From NCBI GenBank assembly GCA_904063045.1, contig CAJFCJ010000017.1, forward strand, positions 372,001 to 436,000: a stretch of 64,000 nt of DNA, in the 5' to 3' direction. Shown here in pieces: positions 1,978 through 9,700 of this stretch. Origin of the DNA: Dimorphilus gyrociliatus (Eukaryota > Animalia > Annelida). The notes under the pieces are model-generated. The model was not told the origin of the DNA, did not search any database, and saw nothing but the letters and a program-made list of their open reading frames with translations. Numbering within the stretch: the stretch's first letter is position 1; each line of letters begins with the position of its first letter. The position numbers and the translations under genes were made by a program.

Positions 1978-3446
1978 TATACTTACTCTAAGTTTCTTGG
2001 CGCGAATCTAAGTGGCTTATTGACAGCCTCGTGACATTTCTAGCAGTCAAGCTTTTCTCTTTATATAGCGTAACGAGCAAAATAGGCGACAACTGCAGTA
2101 GAACTGCAACATGTAGACAAAAAGCTGACATTTGTCGCAGACCGTCAAGTGGCAGCGTCAAACTTTGATGAGCATACGAGCGTTCAATAATTGATCAGTG
2201 ACGCTACACGACCACAAAAGCGTCGATATCGAACACAAACTAAAAAAGAAAAAAAGGCCTATTGAAAAATTTTATAAAAACGAAAGAAAAAAGGGCGTCG
2301 TTCCTGTCTACAACATGTAGTCTAAACGAGCTGGAACGTAAGGATTCGTCGTCACGAAGCGTTACTCGATACTCACCTTTTCCTGTCTGCGTCGTTTGCG
2401 CATGGCTGTCGCCCCGTACACGTATACGCTCGACGCCGGCGTCGCCGCCGTTTTATACGGTGCTTTGTACAGAGGGCGTTACTTTTTTTTTATATCGACG
2501 TCTTCTATGCATAAATCGTGTCTTTTGAACAAGATTTTTTTCGCCCATTATATACCTGTATATCTAACTCTTTCGTGACTCGGGTAAAACATTCTAAAGT
2601 TTCTATTTATATTTCTTTTAAACAAAACAGAGGAAAGTCAGAGGGCTTGTTGAAAAAACAATGTAAGGGAGACGTGGCGGTAGGTAGCGTCGAATATCAC
2701 CTGCGCGTGGAGGCGAGCAAAGGCGTGCGTGTAGCATTAACGCCGGAGGACAGAATCGATGGATCGATGTAGACGCTTTTTCGTCAAAATGCGTTTATTT
2801 TTAATACGACTGCGTATACGGTATACTACGTAATCCCTCAAAAAGCCGGTTTTTTCTTTGCAATCAGTCTAAAAGCTAGGCGGCTTAAAGACGTCATATT
2901 CTAGGCGTCTCACCTGCTCGCGAAAAACACGCGCGTAACTGAACGCCCATTGTTTGTTTGTAGCTATAGAAACGTATGCTTTAATCATTAATACAGCAGT
3001 TCGTGGTTTTGAAGACGACCGCCGGAAGTGATTAGACGCCTGGCTCCTATGCAAAGCGTGACCGTAAAAGGCGGACGTCTGCGGGAGGGAATAGAAAGGG
3101 AGAGGAAGAAATCGGCTTCCCTTTAAAGGAAGGAAACTGTTGCTATCAAAACGTCGCTAAAAGCAACGCCGGAAGTTTACTAATTCCCGCGCCACGTGTA
3201 TACTTGTCGCTAAGCTAATAGCGTCGTCCCGTCTATATCGCTATTGTTTGTCAATTATTTACGGAACAGAGGGCGCACGTCTCTCCCCCCAACATTTAAT
3301 TAACTTATTCCTTCGAACGCACTTAGTCAAATTCTATAATTAATATTGCAGCCATCTAGTGTTAAATGTACGTAAAGCTAATCGCTTATTTTATTATCAT
3401 CTCAACTGCAACCTAAAATCAACTGATAGAAAATATAACGATAGAT

Positions 3447-5811
3447 TTAGGTAAATGTAAGTCCAGCTTCATTATAAACTTTGAAGATCTTCTCAATAGA
3501 AGAAATATAAGCAGCAGTACGCAAATCCAATCCAAGATTATAGCGCATTGCTGTTTTCATAATGGCTCTTGCAGACCTCTCCATAGTGTAAGCAAGTCCA
3601 GAGTGGACGATATCTTTTTCACTTGCGCCAGAAATGGCTTTCTCGAATTCCTCGCTTGGGGTGATTGGAATTCTTTCACCGCTTCTTCCGAATTTTCTCT
3701 CCAAGCTCTGTTGAACAGAAGCCAACAAATGGTAGTTACTGTCTCTTTCATATTTGAATGTCAGACGACCAAAGCTGACATGGTTTAGGTTCTTCAACCA
3801 TTCAAAATAGGAGACTGTAACACCACCAGCGTTAACGTACATATCAGGAATAACTAAAATATCCCGATCTCTCAAAATTTTGTCGGCTCCAATGGTGGTA
3901 GGTCCATTAGCACCCTCTGCAATGATCTTAGCTTGAATCCTGTGCGCATTATCTTCGTTTATAACCTTTTCGACGGCGGCAGGAACAAATATGTCGCATT
4001 TTTCAAACATAAGGTTCTCCCCTTCGTATGGCTGAGCTCCAGGGAAGCCCTGGATAGTTCTATTTTCGATAACGTAATCTTCTAGTTCTCTCGGGTCAAT
4101 ACCTGTTGGGTTAATAATCGAACCATCTCTTTCGATTATTCCAACACAACGAGCGCCAGAACGATGCAAATAACGCATTGTGTGCAAACCGACATTACCA
4201 AAACCTTGAATGATGAAGGTCTTGTCTTTAAATCCAGGTGGGATACCAATCATTGACATATAGGAAGCTTCTTGAATGAAGTTCTCAATTCCATGGAAGA
4301 TACCCTAAATGATTTATAGGAAAATTAATAGAAACATCAAAAAAAGGAAGTATTGGTTTTTTTTTGCGGTTAGTTGAAACAGAAATAAAAACGAAATCGA
4401 CAAATAATAAGGAAAAGCTCTAGAGAAATTAATGCACACCCTTCCAGTAGCTGAAATCCTGCCATGAATTCCACCCTGGGAAATGGGTTTTCCTGTTACA
4501 CAGGCAGCTGCGCTGATATCGTTCCAACCTAATGAATAAAAAAAGAATAGGAAAAAAGTGTGAGATACAGATATCATAAAGTGAGCTTTTAAAAGAGAAT
4601 ATTAAAATAAACTAGCTATTTAAACTATAATGAAAACGATAATGCAATAAGAAGAATAGCAATAGCTTGTGTTACGCTGACAACAACTTTTCACCACGTT
4701 ATAGCTGGTAAACTTACTCGACCGGTTGCCGATATTCGCCCATGAATACCTCCATGAGAAATAGGTTTACCCGTAACACAACCATAGGAATTTAAGTCGT
4801 AATGACCTGGTATTTAATGATTTAAAATGTTCTAATTTCATTTTTTAATCTAAACAAACATCAAGCTTATGCTACGACATGAATGCTAAGAATAGTTACT
4901 GTCAGAGCTCAAACGGTACCTAATGTTTGGCTGTATGTGTCCGCAATCCAGCTCATCTCACGTTCGCCAGTTCCCATATCTGGAGCGGGAACATCAATAC
5001 CAGGTCCGATAAAGCCTTTTTTTGCCAGTTCAACGGTAAATCTAGAATAAAAGAATAAAATGTAGATTATTCTCAAGAGCTTTTAATATGATTGATGAAG
5101 GTCATTTTACCTTCTAGTAATTTTTTCTAATTCAGAAATACTGAAATTACGAGGATTAATTTTCAAACCAGCCTTAGCTCCTCCAAAAGGTACGTCGACG
5201 CATGCACATTTGTATGTCATAAGTGAGGCTAAAGCCTTCACTTCATCTATATTTACATCGTCGCTATATCGGATACCTATTGATAACAAAATAGTATTCT
5301 TAATTTAGTTAGATAAAAAAAAACGGATAAAGTCAGACTCTTAAAACGGAAATTAAATTTGACACGTGATTTAAAGAACAATAGAACCATAATTTCTTTC
5401 TTTACATATGTATAGTATATAAATATAAAAACCTCCTTTGCAAGGTGTCCTATGTTGGCTGTGTTGCGCTCTCCAACCTTGGATAATTTCGAATTCTCCA
5501 TTATCTCTCTTAATGGGAAACGTAATTGATACAACGTGATTGCAGGGCTTAATCATTTTTAGGATTCCTCGCACTCTCTTTCTCTTTTCGTCCTCCGAAA
5601 TTCTCTCCCTTAAGTCTTCGACCAACTTGTCCTCCATTAAGGATGCGGCCTTGTCAAAGAACATTTCGACCATTTCGAAAAAATTAGGATCATCTCTTGC
5701 ATCTGTTGAGTTGTTAGCTTTCTGCGTGATCCCCAAAGAGGATGTTCGTAGTAAACTGAAGCCATTTTGGTTTGCAGTCCTCGATATACTTTTAAAGGCA
5801 GAACGAAGCAT
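3447..5811 (-). CDS. GLUD1: Mitochondrial glutamate dehydrogenase (animal type with antenna), 537 aa, with mutually exclusive exons
   Basis: Exons 5811-5433, 5276-5111, 5041-4920, [4806-4718 OR 4528-4440], 4304-3447; all GT-AG and the phases add up (1614 nt). Motifs [62 protein letters not shown], antenna region, C-terminal LTFT. Confidence 0.97.
4440..4528 (-). CDS. GLUD1: GDH alternative exon B ([30 protein letters not shown])
   Basis: 89 nt, pyrimidine-rich acceptor ttag at 4529-4532, donor gtgtgc at 4439, same phases as exon A. Confidence 0.9.
4718..4806 (-). CDS. GLUD1: GDH alternative exon A ([30 protein letters not shown])
   Basis: 89 nt, acceptor ccag at 4807-4810, donor gtaagt at 4717, phase 1 to 0. 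Confidence 0.9.
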
Positions 5812-6037
5812 TTTTGCTGTCTCTGAAATGAAATGATCTAATGTAAGCTAAGTGTTTGATATGCTGATAACTACTTACCAATGTGTGTTTCAACGCAAAA
5901 AGGACCTGACAAGAAGCTCGTAGTACGACCTTGAGGTGTGTCGACACGTGACTATTTTCAACCAATTAAAATATGAGCCAATAGCCGACCGTATAACAGT
6001 TGTTATCTATTTCCGCTTAATATCGCTAGGTCAAGGG
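5812..6037. promoter_or_regulatory. Bidirectional promoter region GDH / ATP synthase f
   Basis: 226 bp between divergent ATGs of two mitochondrial-protein genes; E-box GACACGTGAC at 5943-5952. Confidence 0.65.
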
Positions 6038-6793: not shown

Positions 6794-9700
6794 CTAGACT
6801 TGATTAATTGTCTTTTGTGAATCATTCCCGTCAGCCTGATTTTGTTCCTGAAAAAGCAGATAGATAATAATAATTAGCATAATTCGTGAAATTTGTAAAC
6901 TGATACATACACTTTTTTGCATTGAGTTGTTCACCTGACCATTTTCCTAAGAGAGAAATGGAAGATTATTATTAATTGAATAAGTTAATAATATTATTGG
7001 GATAAAGAAAAATGACATTTACTGAATTAAACAAAAAAATATGTAGGTGTCTATTAGCAAATTGAATTTAAAAGGGGAATGAGTATAACTTAAAGTGTTG
7101 TGAAGAAAACAGTCCAAATAAAAGTCATAAGCAAGAGTCTCTGTGCACACAACTCATACCTTCTTTTTGCTTGATACAGTAGTTGTTTTGAAAACTGTGC
7201 GTGCAGTTTTCTCAATTTTTTTCTTACTACTAACAGTATATGTTCTATTAACAGTACTTGTCACCATGTTAGTAACAGATTTTGTAACACTTTCCGTTTT
7301 AAACTTCTGCAATTTCAAACGGTAGGGAGAGAGTAGAGAGATAGAGAAAAAATATATTCTTTTTAAATATTTGTAATAAGTTTTTCTGATGTTTTTATAG
7401 CCAGCACAGTATTTTAAAAAGACTTGACTATATATTCATAATTATCTTTCTAAAGCTTACCTCAGTTTGACTCCCTAAAAATGGCAAAAAAAAAAAACAT
7501 TATATTAATTTGTTTACTTGGATATGAATTTAATTACCTGTTCTATCGACATCGACACTTCTAACATTAGTATCACCTGTTCGCATAGAAAAAGTTCTTA
7601 AGTAAATGTGTTGGGAAAATGATATTGAATATTGCTTTTGTTAAAAGGTTCTAAGGAGAATTATTTTTAGAAGAAAAACTATCAGAAATCGCTAAACTAA
7701 TATAATTAGAAAGCACGGCTTTAAATGATTTCGTTTGGCGTACCATTATTTAACTGTAATTCATTTGAGCTAAAAGAATTAGGATTTTGGTCCTCTCTGA
7801 CTTGCTGCTGATTGATTGCATCATTTCTATTTCCAATGTCTATTTCTGCCTTATCAAAGTTAGAATTTTTTGCCACCAGTTCTGAATTGTCATTTTGCCT
7901 TTCATCAACGATTAGAGATTGTAAATTTTCGTTAGTTTGTGACTGACTATTGTCTTGCAAAGAAGATTGCTGAGAATTTGATGCGTCGTCTTGAGTTTTC
8001 TCCTCAGCGATTAGGATATTGTTATTCTGATTATCTTTGTCACTTACTATTGTGTTATCCTGTAAGGTGCCATCTGGTGAATTTTGATGTACATTGTTAT
8101 TATAAGATGAATCTTGAGAGTTTAACTGTGAATTTTTCAATGGATTAGCCTCAGCATTGGTATTATCTGGAGCTGCTTGTAACCCAGCTTGATTATTGGT
8201 ATCAATGGGGTCTGAATTCGGGTTAACTTGCTGAAGGTTGACTTCATTATTGTTCATATTATCATTATTCAAATGTGAAGCACCTGAATCATTTACTTGT
8301 AAGATCGTTGGGTGATTTTGTTCAGAGTTTGCTCTTTTAAATTGTAGAGAATCTCCGTTGGCCTGGTTATTGTTATGGACATCCACTGGATTCAATTCTT
8401 GATTATTATTAATAGTATCTGCTTGATTCAACCCTTGGTTATTGTTATTGGCATTTTCTTGATTCAAACCTTGGTTATTGTTATTGGCATCCGCCAGATT
8501 CAATCCTTGGTTATTATTAATATTATCTACTTGATTCAATCCTGGATTATTATTAACATTACCCGCCGGATTCAACCCTTGGTTATTGTTATTGACATCC
8601 ACTGGATTCAATCCTTGATTATTATTAATAGTATCTGCTTGATTCAACCCTTGATTATTGTTATTGACATCCACCGGATTCAATCCTTGACCATTATTAA
8701 TAGTATCTGCTTGATTTAATCCTTGGTTATTGTTATTAGCAGTTGCTAGATTCAAACCTTGGTTATTGTTGTTAGTATCCACTGGATTCAATCCTTGATT
8801 ATTATTATTGTTATCATTACCCACCGGATTCAATCCTTGGTTATTGTTATTAACATCCACCGGATTCAATCCTTGACCATTATTAATAGTATCTGCTTGA
8901 TTTAATCCTTGGTTATTGTTATTAACGTTTGCTAGATTCACACCTTGGTTATTGTTATTAGCATCCATTAGATTCAATCCTTGATTATTATTATTATTAA
9001 CATCCACTGGATTCAATCCTTGGTTGTTATTCTGACTGTTTTCAAGCGTTTTTTCCTGATAATTTTGTGATACGGCAGGTGAGTTATTAATAATTTGTTG
9101 ATTGCCAATTGAATTGTCACTTTGTCCCATTAAGTTGGAATCAATTTGGTTTGAATTATCTAAGTTCAAAGGGAGATCGAACAAAGTGATTGGTACAGAA
9201 TATATTATAATCAGTTGGAAAAACCTTAATGGGAGATAATAAACTAATTGAGGGTATCTTTAGTACAAAATTTTTAATTTAAATTATTAATTAATACTAT
9301 AGGTAAATCTTTTAATGAGGATAAGGTTTTCTATTTGAGTATAAGTGTAATACTGTAAATATCTTACTTGTTATTTGAGAATTCGGTGCTTCGCTATTTG
9401 TTTGTGGAGATTGATTTAAGGTATCAGTTTGTTGATTATTATTTGAAATGGGGGATTCATCTTTGGACTGGAAAAGTATTATTTTTAAAAAATTCCTAAG
9501 AAAGAGAAGCTAAACGCAAATTTGAGAGAAAGCTCACTATTTGTTTTTGAGCAGTTGAGTCTTGAGCAATGTTCCTCGTATTAGTTGTTGATGAAGGTAA
9601 CTGATCTATAATATCAGCCTTTGAATTGGCATTGTCGTCTCTAAAAAGAATTTCAATAAAATTACGTTTAAATATAGAAAATGTAATTGTATATACTGAT

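Follow-up and report, generated by a model that had tools for sequence, protein, structure and literature searches.

A tandem pair of mutually exclusive exons in the single glutamate dehydrogenase gene of the annelid Dimorphilus gyrociliatus

Glutamate dehydrogenase (GDH) connects carbon metabolism with nitrogen metabolism. Its allosteric control is a textbook example of enzyme regulation specific to animals. To our knowledge, the animal route to two differently regulated GDHs has so far been gene duplication, as in GLUD2, a retroposed second gene whose key changes lie in the pivot helix and the antenna region and not in residues 189-205. Splicing is known to achieve a comparable result in pyruvate kinase, where the tandem, equal-length, mutually exclusive exons 9 and 10 of PKM rebuild the allosteric effector pocket and leave catalysis intact; activation of the M2 form by fructose 1,6-bisphosphate is experimentally established. 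Clusters of mutually exclusive exons under competing RNA pairing are known from Dscam exon 6 and from 14-3-3 xi. Here we analyzed a stretch of 64,000 nucleotides from Dimorphilus gyrociliatus (contig CAJFCJ010000017.1 of assembly GCA_904063045.1, positions 372,001 to 436,000; hereafter the window), which carries on its minus strand, at 3447-5811, an animal-type GDH gene (DgyrCDS10792). The gene has five coding exon positions, and the fourth is filled by two tandem exons, 4A and 4B.

The best explanation of the locus as a whole, to which we assign a probability of about 0.8, is that each mRNA takes exactly one of the two exons, giving two mitochondrial GDH isoforms of 537 amino acids. The coding sequence with a single exon 4 measures 1614 nt, or 537 residues. 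The deposited protein CAD5122355.1 (P0264) contains exons 1, 2, 3, 4B and 5 of the window letter for letter, and the coding exons were placed as follows.

5433 to 5811, minus strand: coding exon 1, from the ATG at 5811, with the transit peptide and the start of the substrate domain, ending in phase 1; placed by the open reading frame (ORF), a GT donor at 5432-5431, the RNA joint 5274>5431 (cut +2) and an exact match to residues 1-127 of P0264
5111 to 5276, minus strand: coding exon 2; placed by RNA joints, an AG acceptor at 5278-5277 and the peptide IRYSDD...EKITR in P0264
4920 to 5041, minus strand: coding exon 3, whose final base, G, is the first base of the Gly188 codon
4718 to 4806, minus strand: exon 4A, 89 nt, phase 1 to 0, with a weak pyrimidine tract and the consensus donor GTAAGT
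4440 to 4528, minus strand: exon 4B, 89 nt, phase as in 4A, with a strong pyrimidine tract and the donor GTGTGC; present in the proteins P0130 and P0264
3447 to 4304, minus strand: last coding exon (exon 5), with the NAD domain, antenna, pivot helix and stop codon; placed by its ORF and PF00208

The identity of the gene is clear. A profile search matched PF00208 to the last exon (window 3768-4235, E 2.1e-48), and this match is unique in the 77.9-Mb assembly, so that GDH is a single gene in this worm. The last exon aligns along its whole length (100%) with GDHs of annelids, molluscs, arthropods and vertebrates, at 69-81% identity, and relatives in the database carry PF02812 together with PF00208. 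The ELFV domain, the similarity in the antenna and pivot region and the presence of Arg211, His209, Ser213 and Arg217 place it among the animal-type hexameric GDHs (GLUD1-like).

The two exons at position 4 are adjacent, homologous, equal in length and phase and flanked by intact splice sites, as expected of a tandem exon duplication. Exon 4A lies between ...ataccAG and GTAAGT, and exon 4B has on its 5' side a long pyrimidine tract that ends in ...cattAG and on its 3' side GTGTGC; the intron between them, at 189 nt, is long enough for splicing. Their in-frame 29-mers match residues 189-217 of bovine and human GDH (1hwy numbering) with E values of about 1e-11 for 4A and about 1e-10 for 4B. The two exons agree at 56 of 89 nucleotides, and the 21 codons from C197 to R217 show 17 synonymous changes for 17.3 synonymous sites, which amounts to saturation, with a single non-synonymous change. 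When 4B is read after 4A, a stop follows after 10 codons, and when exon 3 is joined straight to exon 5 the frame reads YLPWN* and stops after 5 codons. Because a transcript with both exons, or with neither, loses the frame and meets an early stop, only the forms with a single exon 4 can encode GDH, and mRNAs with double inclusion or double skipping would presumably decay.

To examine how the exons are used, four RNA runs were aligned to window 3400-5900. All of these data are assembled contigs, which show that a junction exists and not how often it is used, and three of the runs (X1, X3 and X8) are informative for the choice of exon 4. Run X8 shows zero differences from the window at very high depth, and one of its contigs joins exons 1, 2, 3, 4B and 5. 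A contig of run X1, a coral metatranscriptome with more than 99% similarity to the window, likewise joins exons 1, 2, 3, 4B and 5 (with 4920>4528 and 4440>4304). In run X3, a marine metatranscriptome 95-99% alike whose differences from the window fall almost entirely on third codon positions, a contig joins exons 1, 2, 3, 4A and 5 at exactly 4920>4806 and 4718>4304 (joints 4804>4918 and 4303>4717), with four differences from the window inside exon 4A. Among the RNA runs examined, no contig contained both exons (4718>4528) or neither (4920>4304). Both exons are therefore real, are spliced at the predicted sites and occur one per transcript.

To assess selection on the pair, we compared the window with a sibling lineage, reached through the last-exon ORF of a relative (P0265) and represented by genomic contigs from five Logan assemblies. 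Two of these contigs, L008 and L009, span the whole region, and divergence between the window and L008 was computed by the Nei-Gojobori method (NG86) as the proportions of synonymous (pS) and non-synonymous (pN) differences. The exon 5 protein of the sibling lineage is 95% identical, with pS values near saturation (0.48 in exon 2, 0.83 in exon 3 and 0.65 in exon 5). Both alternative exons are present in L008 and L009, each with 89 nt and with AG and GT kept, and 4B reads WNDINAAAC.... Since each exon is far closer to its ortholog than to its paralog, the duplication is older than the split of the two lineages.

The two exons diverge in different ways. Exon 4A differs from its L008 counterpart at 18 of 89 nucleotides, about 16 of the changes being synonymous and 2 non-synonymous (pS 0.72, pN 0.03); judged from this comparison, it shows the pattern of a constitutive exon, which is incompatible with a pseudo-exon. 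Exon 4B is identical at 86 of 89 nucleotides, with 2 synonymous changes and 1 non-synonymous change, and its pS of 0.094 against 0.65 in exon 5 is significantly low (Fisher p=1e-6). The constraint extends into the adjoining intron sequence.

4529 to 4573, minus strand: intron flank 5' of 4B, which includes the pyrimidine tract and the region of the branch point; L008 agrees at 36 of 45 nt
4395 to 4439, minus strand: intron flank 3' of 4B; 37 of 45 nt identical to L008

These flanks are 80-82% identical to L008, compared with about 56-59% in the remaining intron sequence. Apparent constraint of this kind, at the level of nucleotides and in both 4B and its flanks, is what a regulated alternative exon usually shows. 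On this evidence, purifying selection maintains both exons across a divergence at which synonymous sites are saturated.

The anatomy put forward in the original prediction, which had been drawn from the DNA alone, was thus borne out throughout. It had proposed two paralogous 89-nt exons with identical phases and intact splice sites, and both lie at the bases given, with AG and GT in place; a frame shift whenever both or neither are used, which the stops after 10 and 5 codons confirm; heavily diverged third positions around an unchanged protein core, now counted as 17 synonymous changes against 1 between C197 and R217; and correspondence to bovine GDH 188-217, matched by the 29-mers over 189-217. 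The upstream donor at 4920 and the downstream acceptor at 4304 were confirmed by RNA. Among the junctions it had named, 4920>4806, 4920>4528, 4718>4304 and 4440>4304 were found in RNA contigs and 4718>4528 in none. Its claim that one gene makes two isoforms is upheld by both junction sets in the RNA contigs, by purifying selection on both exons and by the presence of a single GDH gene.

We further analyzed the sequences around exon 4A for RNA structure that might bear on the choice. The exon element TTGTGTTAC(G/T) has its complement in a downstream intron element, (C/A)GTAACACAA, at a distance of 95 nt in the window and 124 nt in L008. A second, shorter pairing lies closer to the donor.

4772 to 4781, minus strand: 5' arm of the stem, inside exon 4A, TTGTGTTACG; inverted repeat I1, retained in minimum-energy folds
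4667 to 4676, minus strand: 3' arm of the stem, in the 4A-4B intron, CGTAACACAA; a conserved block in an intron about 59% identical overall
4707 to 4713, minus strand: second stem, intron +5 to +11 after the 4A donor, GTTTACC; pairs with exon 4A GGTAAAC (4771-4765)

The first stem has 10 perfect pairs in the window (4781-4772 with 4676-4667) and 11 in L008, where CAGTAACACAA pairs with TTGTGTTACTG; the single differing position is compensated, a G-C pair in the window being replaced by U-A in L008. Shuffled introns reached this stem length in 22 of 2000 cases for the window (p 0.011) and in 0 of 2000 for L008 (p <0.0005). The minimum-energy folds of the window (z-score -2.3) and of L008 (z-score -3.1) both include the stem. 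The second stem corresponds to inverted repeat I7 in the window (7 pairs) and to I15 in L008 (10 bp, perfect), and a 13-nt sequence at this stem, GTAAGTTTACCAG, is invariant between the two.

Both stems enclose or abut the donor of 4A, and we put the odds that they control the use of this donor at about even. For 4B, no conserved docking or selector pairing partner was found, the other inverted repeats being A/T-rich or unshared between the lineages. These features suggest a scheme in which 4B, with its strong acceptor, long pyrimidine tract and moderate donor, would be the default exon, and 4A, whose acceptor is weak and whose consensus donor lies within a hairpin, would be the regulated choice. 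We take 4B as the default because it is the form found in the reference-identical transcriptome and in a 98%-identical Logan protein (P0130). Because the 189-nt intron of the worm is spliceable, exclusivity rests on the reading frame and probably also on RNA structure. The near-invariant 4B and the covarying 4A hairpin together would offer a compact model in which to study how the choice between two exons is encoded.

A counterpart of the worm pair was identified in mussels. RefSeq gives isoforms X1 and X2, of 542 residues each, for Mytilus edulis (XP_071128713/XP_071128714) and M. galloprovincialis (XP_076075140/XP_076075141), and the five residues by which X1 and X2 differ all fall within the equivalent of exon 4 (SNDINARAC...RIS versus YNDMNSSAC...RTS). 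The M. edulis locus (L013) contains two 89-nt exons at 8551-8639 and 8671-8759. The spacer between them (8640-8670) measures 31 nt from GT to AG, which is too short to splice and therefore enforces exclusivity by itself. Transcript-derived proteins of a bivalve-like species show both forms (P0179, P0196). The original prediction had left it undecided whether such an event was already described. The literature searched contained no description of the worm or the mussel event, and the homologous Mytilus event turned out to be annotated in the form of these RefSeq isoforms.

A second copy of the exon was sought in the GDH loci of Paralvinella, Lamellibrachia, Lottia, Mizuhopecten, Bugula, Rotaria and Saccoglossus, each of which has one copy, and Ridgeia likewise shows one form, by protein alone. 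The Lingula GDH protein was not located on a contig, and the annotated isoforms of Lingula, Lineus, Tachypleus, Varroa and Oratosquilla show no difference in the exon 4 equivalent. Given the single copies elsewhere, independent duplications in worm and mussel are the simpler reading; on this distribution the two origins are probably independent, though 29 residues are too few for proof. A single ancient duplication shared by mussel and worm was also considered; it is the less probable reading, as the distribution does not support it.

Two other arrangements came to light in the same survey. In Rotaria sp. Silwood1 (L006), two tandem GDH genes lie at 86-2144 and 2352-4925, and the second has Gly196 and a residue other than Gln at 205, rare states that also occur in 4A, reached there through gene and not exon duplication. 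In the sea urchin Diadema setosum, isoforms X1 and X2 (XP_072165728/XP_072165729; P0226/P0281), of 545 amino acids each, differ at 7 positions, all within 511-543, which suggests that another phylum has a second, unrelated alternative-exon pair, this one for the C-terminus of GDH.

What the choice would mean for the enzyme depends on the residues that differ. In the window, A and B differ at 189 (H/W), 190 (Y/N), 192 (L/I), 193 (N/S), 194 (S/A), 195 (Y/A), 196 (G/A) and 205 (H/Q). The sibling lineage keeps the differences at 189, 190, 192, 194, 195 and 196 and has N193 and Q205 in both of its exons; as far as these two lineages tell, the H/Q contrast at 205 is specific to the reference lineage. 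We surveyed 128 distinct versions of the exon 4 segment from other animals for the states at three of these positions.

Position 205: Q in 123 of 128, H in 0 of 128
Position 196: A in 123 of 128, G in 4 of 128
Position 195: H in 71, S in 25, Y in 9, A in 9 and R in 8 of 128

Exon A is more like other annelid sequences (HGDLNNHAC, HGDLNAFAC) than exon B is, and the ...LNAYGC motif of 4A also occurs in two annelid-like metatranscriptome proteins (P0127 and P0128). A region search with the A-like P0127 for an A-form protein of the worm lineage found none. The top hits of P0127, from Teladorsagia circumcincta (P0311) and Timema bartmani (P0121), were set aside, as they contain exact repeats of about 80-95 residues, not diverged exons, and look like assembly or model duplications.

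The segment lies close to residues of documented function. In published work on GDH, R217 is listed as a main contact of GTP, S213 and H450 as minor ones, and Arg86 and Asp119 as contacts of ADP (PMC8228935). The hydrogen bonds stabilising bound GTP involve H209 and S213; in addition, H209 acts as a hinge and approaches the regulatory NADH (PMC7536180). A ligand water network in bovine GDH includes His195, Ile203, Ser204, Gln205 and His209, at a site that also contains Asp119, His85 and Arg86 (PMC11983793). Exons 4A and 4B and bovine GDH all have H209, the catalytic R211, S213 and R217, and share an identical 12-residue stretch, in agreement with the earlier claim that both exons retain H209, S213 and R217 of the GTP site. 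The site of the water network is, we presume, the ADP pocket. The original prediction had also placed four differing residues, 189, 190, 195 and 205, near the regulatory site and the hexamer interface; two of them, 195 and 205, are found in the water network of the pocket for ADP and epicatechin gallate (ECG) (PMC11983793), and the roles of 189 and 190 and the placement at the interface are best regarded as putative. All four do differ in the window, and Q205H is not conserved, the sibling lineage having Q.

In the enzyme, the segment would lead to the hinge that joins the substrate domain to the NAD domain and would line the pocket for ADP or regulatory NADH at 195 and 203-205. The likeliest consequence of the exon choice would be a changed response to ADP or NADH (Tyr195-Gly196 versus Ala195-Ala196), with catalysis and the GTP contacts unchanged. 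It is plausible on this basis that the isoforms would be allosterically distinct in their response to ADP or regulatory NADH. Another possibility, at well under even odds, is that both isoforms are made and are enzymatically equivalent, the pair being kept for folding, stability, hexamer assembly or expression switching. Animal GDHs vary widely at positions 189, 190, 192, 194 and 195, which leaves both versions largely within natural variation; A and B agree at the residues whose roles in GTP and substrate binding are documented, and the non-conserved Q205H fits equivalence as well. Nevertheless, six A/B differences have been maintained in both lineages across saturated synonymous divergence, and Mytilus toggles the same positions 189, 192, 194 and 195. 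In addition, the ADP/ECG pocket network is reported to include position 195, and G196 is rare (4/128).

Several points weigh against two allosterically distinct isoforms chosen by splicing, and they are best stated together. The joint that includes 4A, 4718>4304, has just 21 nt on its short side, and inclusion of 4A is seen in one run only, X3, from a lineage 95-99% identical to the window and about 2% divergent from it. Both isoforms together were seen in no single run, in contigs that drop minor variants. The most unusual residue of 4A, Q205H, is absent from the sibling lineage, and the evidence for the stem comes from two distinct sequences with one covarying pair. The observations on RNA would also fit exon use fixed by lineage, with 4B alone used in the reference lineage and 4A alone in that of X3, since each run shows one form: B in X8 and X1, which are identical to the window or more than 99% alike, and A just in X3. 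We consider this unlikely. In the reference lineage and in the much more distant L008 alike, the two exons have intact splice sites and are under purifying selection; an unused exon would have decayed at pS values of 0.5-0.8, and contigs report the dominant path only.

It is more improbable still, to a degree that leaves it little weight, that exon 4A is a decaying pseudo-exon or splicing noise. Its pyrimidine tract is weak, the protein collection contains no 4A protein from the worm lineage, and the cluster of P0130 has three members only. Against this, the frame is open, AG and GT are kept, and the changes that separate 4A from L008 are 16 synonymous against 2 non-synonymous; moreover, 4A is the dominant assembled path in X3 and takes part in an apparently conserved exon-intron stem. 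The preferred reading remains that both exons serve as alternatives, one per mRNA.

The public gene models do not show this arrangement. The deposited worm protein CAD5122355.1 has 556 amino acids, and in it a fragment of 4A, 57 nt long and ending at an internal GT, is fused to 4B. Among the contigs examined, no RNA joint for this model was found, and the model is a chimera that hides the switch and is contradicted by RNA. That it is nevertheless right, with a cryptic donor in 4A (after ...CATGGAG) spliced to 4B and 19 extra hinge residues, can be dismissed as scarcely credible: a protein of exactly that structure has been deposited, but the four RNA runs all use the 4806/4718 or 4528/4440 boundaries, the same artefact appears in M. 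edulis (P0243) where RefSeq gives two 542-aa isoforms, and the duplicated CVTGKPIS occurs in no other GDH apart from assembly duplications. The M. edulis model, CAG2217465.1 (P0243), an older one, is an equivalent chimera of a truncated first copy and the second copy, with a duplicated CVTGKPI motif. A like predictor error has thus arisen in two phyla, each time as a 556-aa model. Both CAD5122355.1 and CAG2217465.1 should give way to two isoforms each.

The RNA contigs also define the 5' end of the gene beyond the coding exons, where an intron interrupts the 5' untranslated region (UTR).

5823 to 5878, minus strand: 5' UTR intron, 56 nt; joint 5822>5879 in run X8
5879 to beyond 5900, minus strand: upstream UTR exon, seen in RNA contigs

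The loose 8-nt ends of the X1 and X3 contigs, AATGTGTG, correspond to window 5880-5887. Within exon 5, at window 4145, a first codon position, the reference has C and contigs of three independent runs (X1, X2 and X3) have T; the C is either a reference-specific allele or an assembly error. Elsewhere in the window, the minus strand at 7721-9184 contains a 487-aa open frame that consists mostly of Asn-rich repeats of the NNNNQGLNP/QADTINN type.

Mutually exclusive exons as such are well known; for the GDH pair, the anatomy is well supported and the functional claim is putative. Compared with Dscam exon 6 and 14-3-3 xi, the worm locus shows an apparently similar pairing of an intronic element with an alternative exon, with a compensatory substitution between the two sequences available. 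It differs in that one stem was found, formed by 4A with its own downstream intron and enclosing the donor, and no docking site with competing selectors. The likeness to GLUD1 and GLUD2 of hominoids, two GDHs of differing allostery in one organism, concerns the outcome only and is an analogy. PKM comes closer in design, as a central metabolic enzyme with a tandem pair of equal-length exons at an effector pocket; it is a different enzyme with a different fold, and the allosteric effect is experimental there and inferred for the worm GDH.

The nearest system is that of Mytilus, in which the same 89-nt phase 1 exon, covering bovine 188-217, is present in tandem and used singly to give isoforms of equal length. 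Worm and mussel both toggle 189, 192, 194 and 195; at the last of these, one exon carries a bulky residue and the other a small one (R/S in Mytilus, Y/A in Dimorphilus). Mytilus differs in toggling 212 (I/T) and not 190, 196 or 205, and its exons lie 31 nt apart, compared with the 189-nt intron of the worm. It is a tentative and rather doubtful conjecture that dinophilids and mussels each duplicated the exon behind one wall of the ADP/NADH pocket to obtain an effector-sensitive and an effector-insensitive GDH, with the worm hairpin gating the choice. The isoform pairs, which differ by 5 to 8 residues, offer natural minimal pairs for dissecting the ADP/NADH pocket. Next to the gene duplication that produced GLUD2, the worm and Mytilus loci represent a splicing route that changes only the segment adjoining that pocket.

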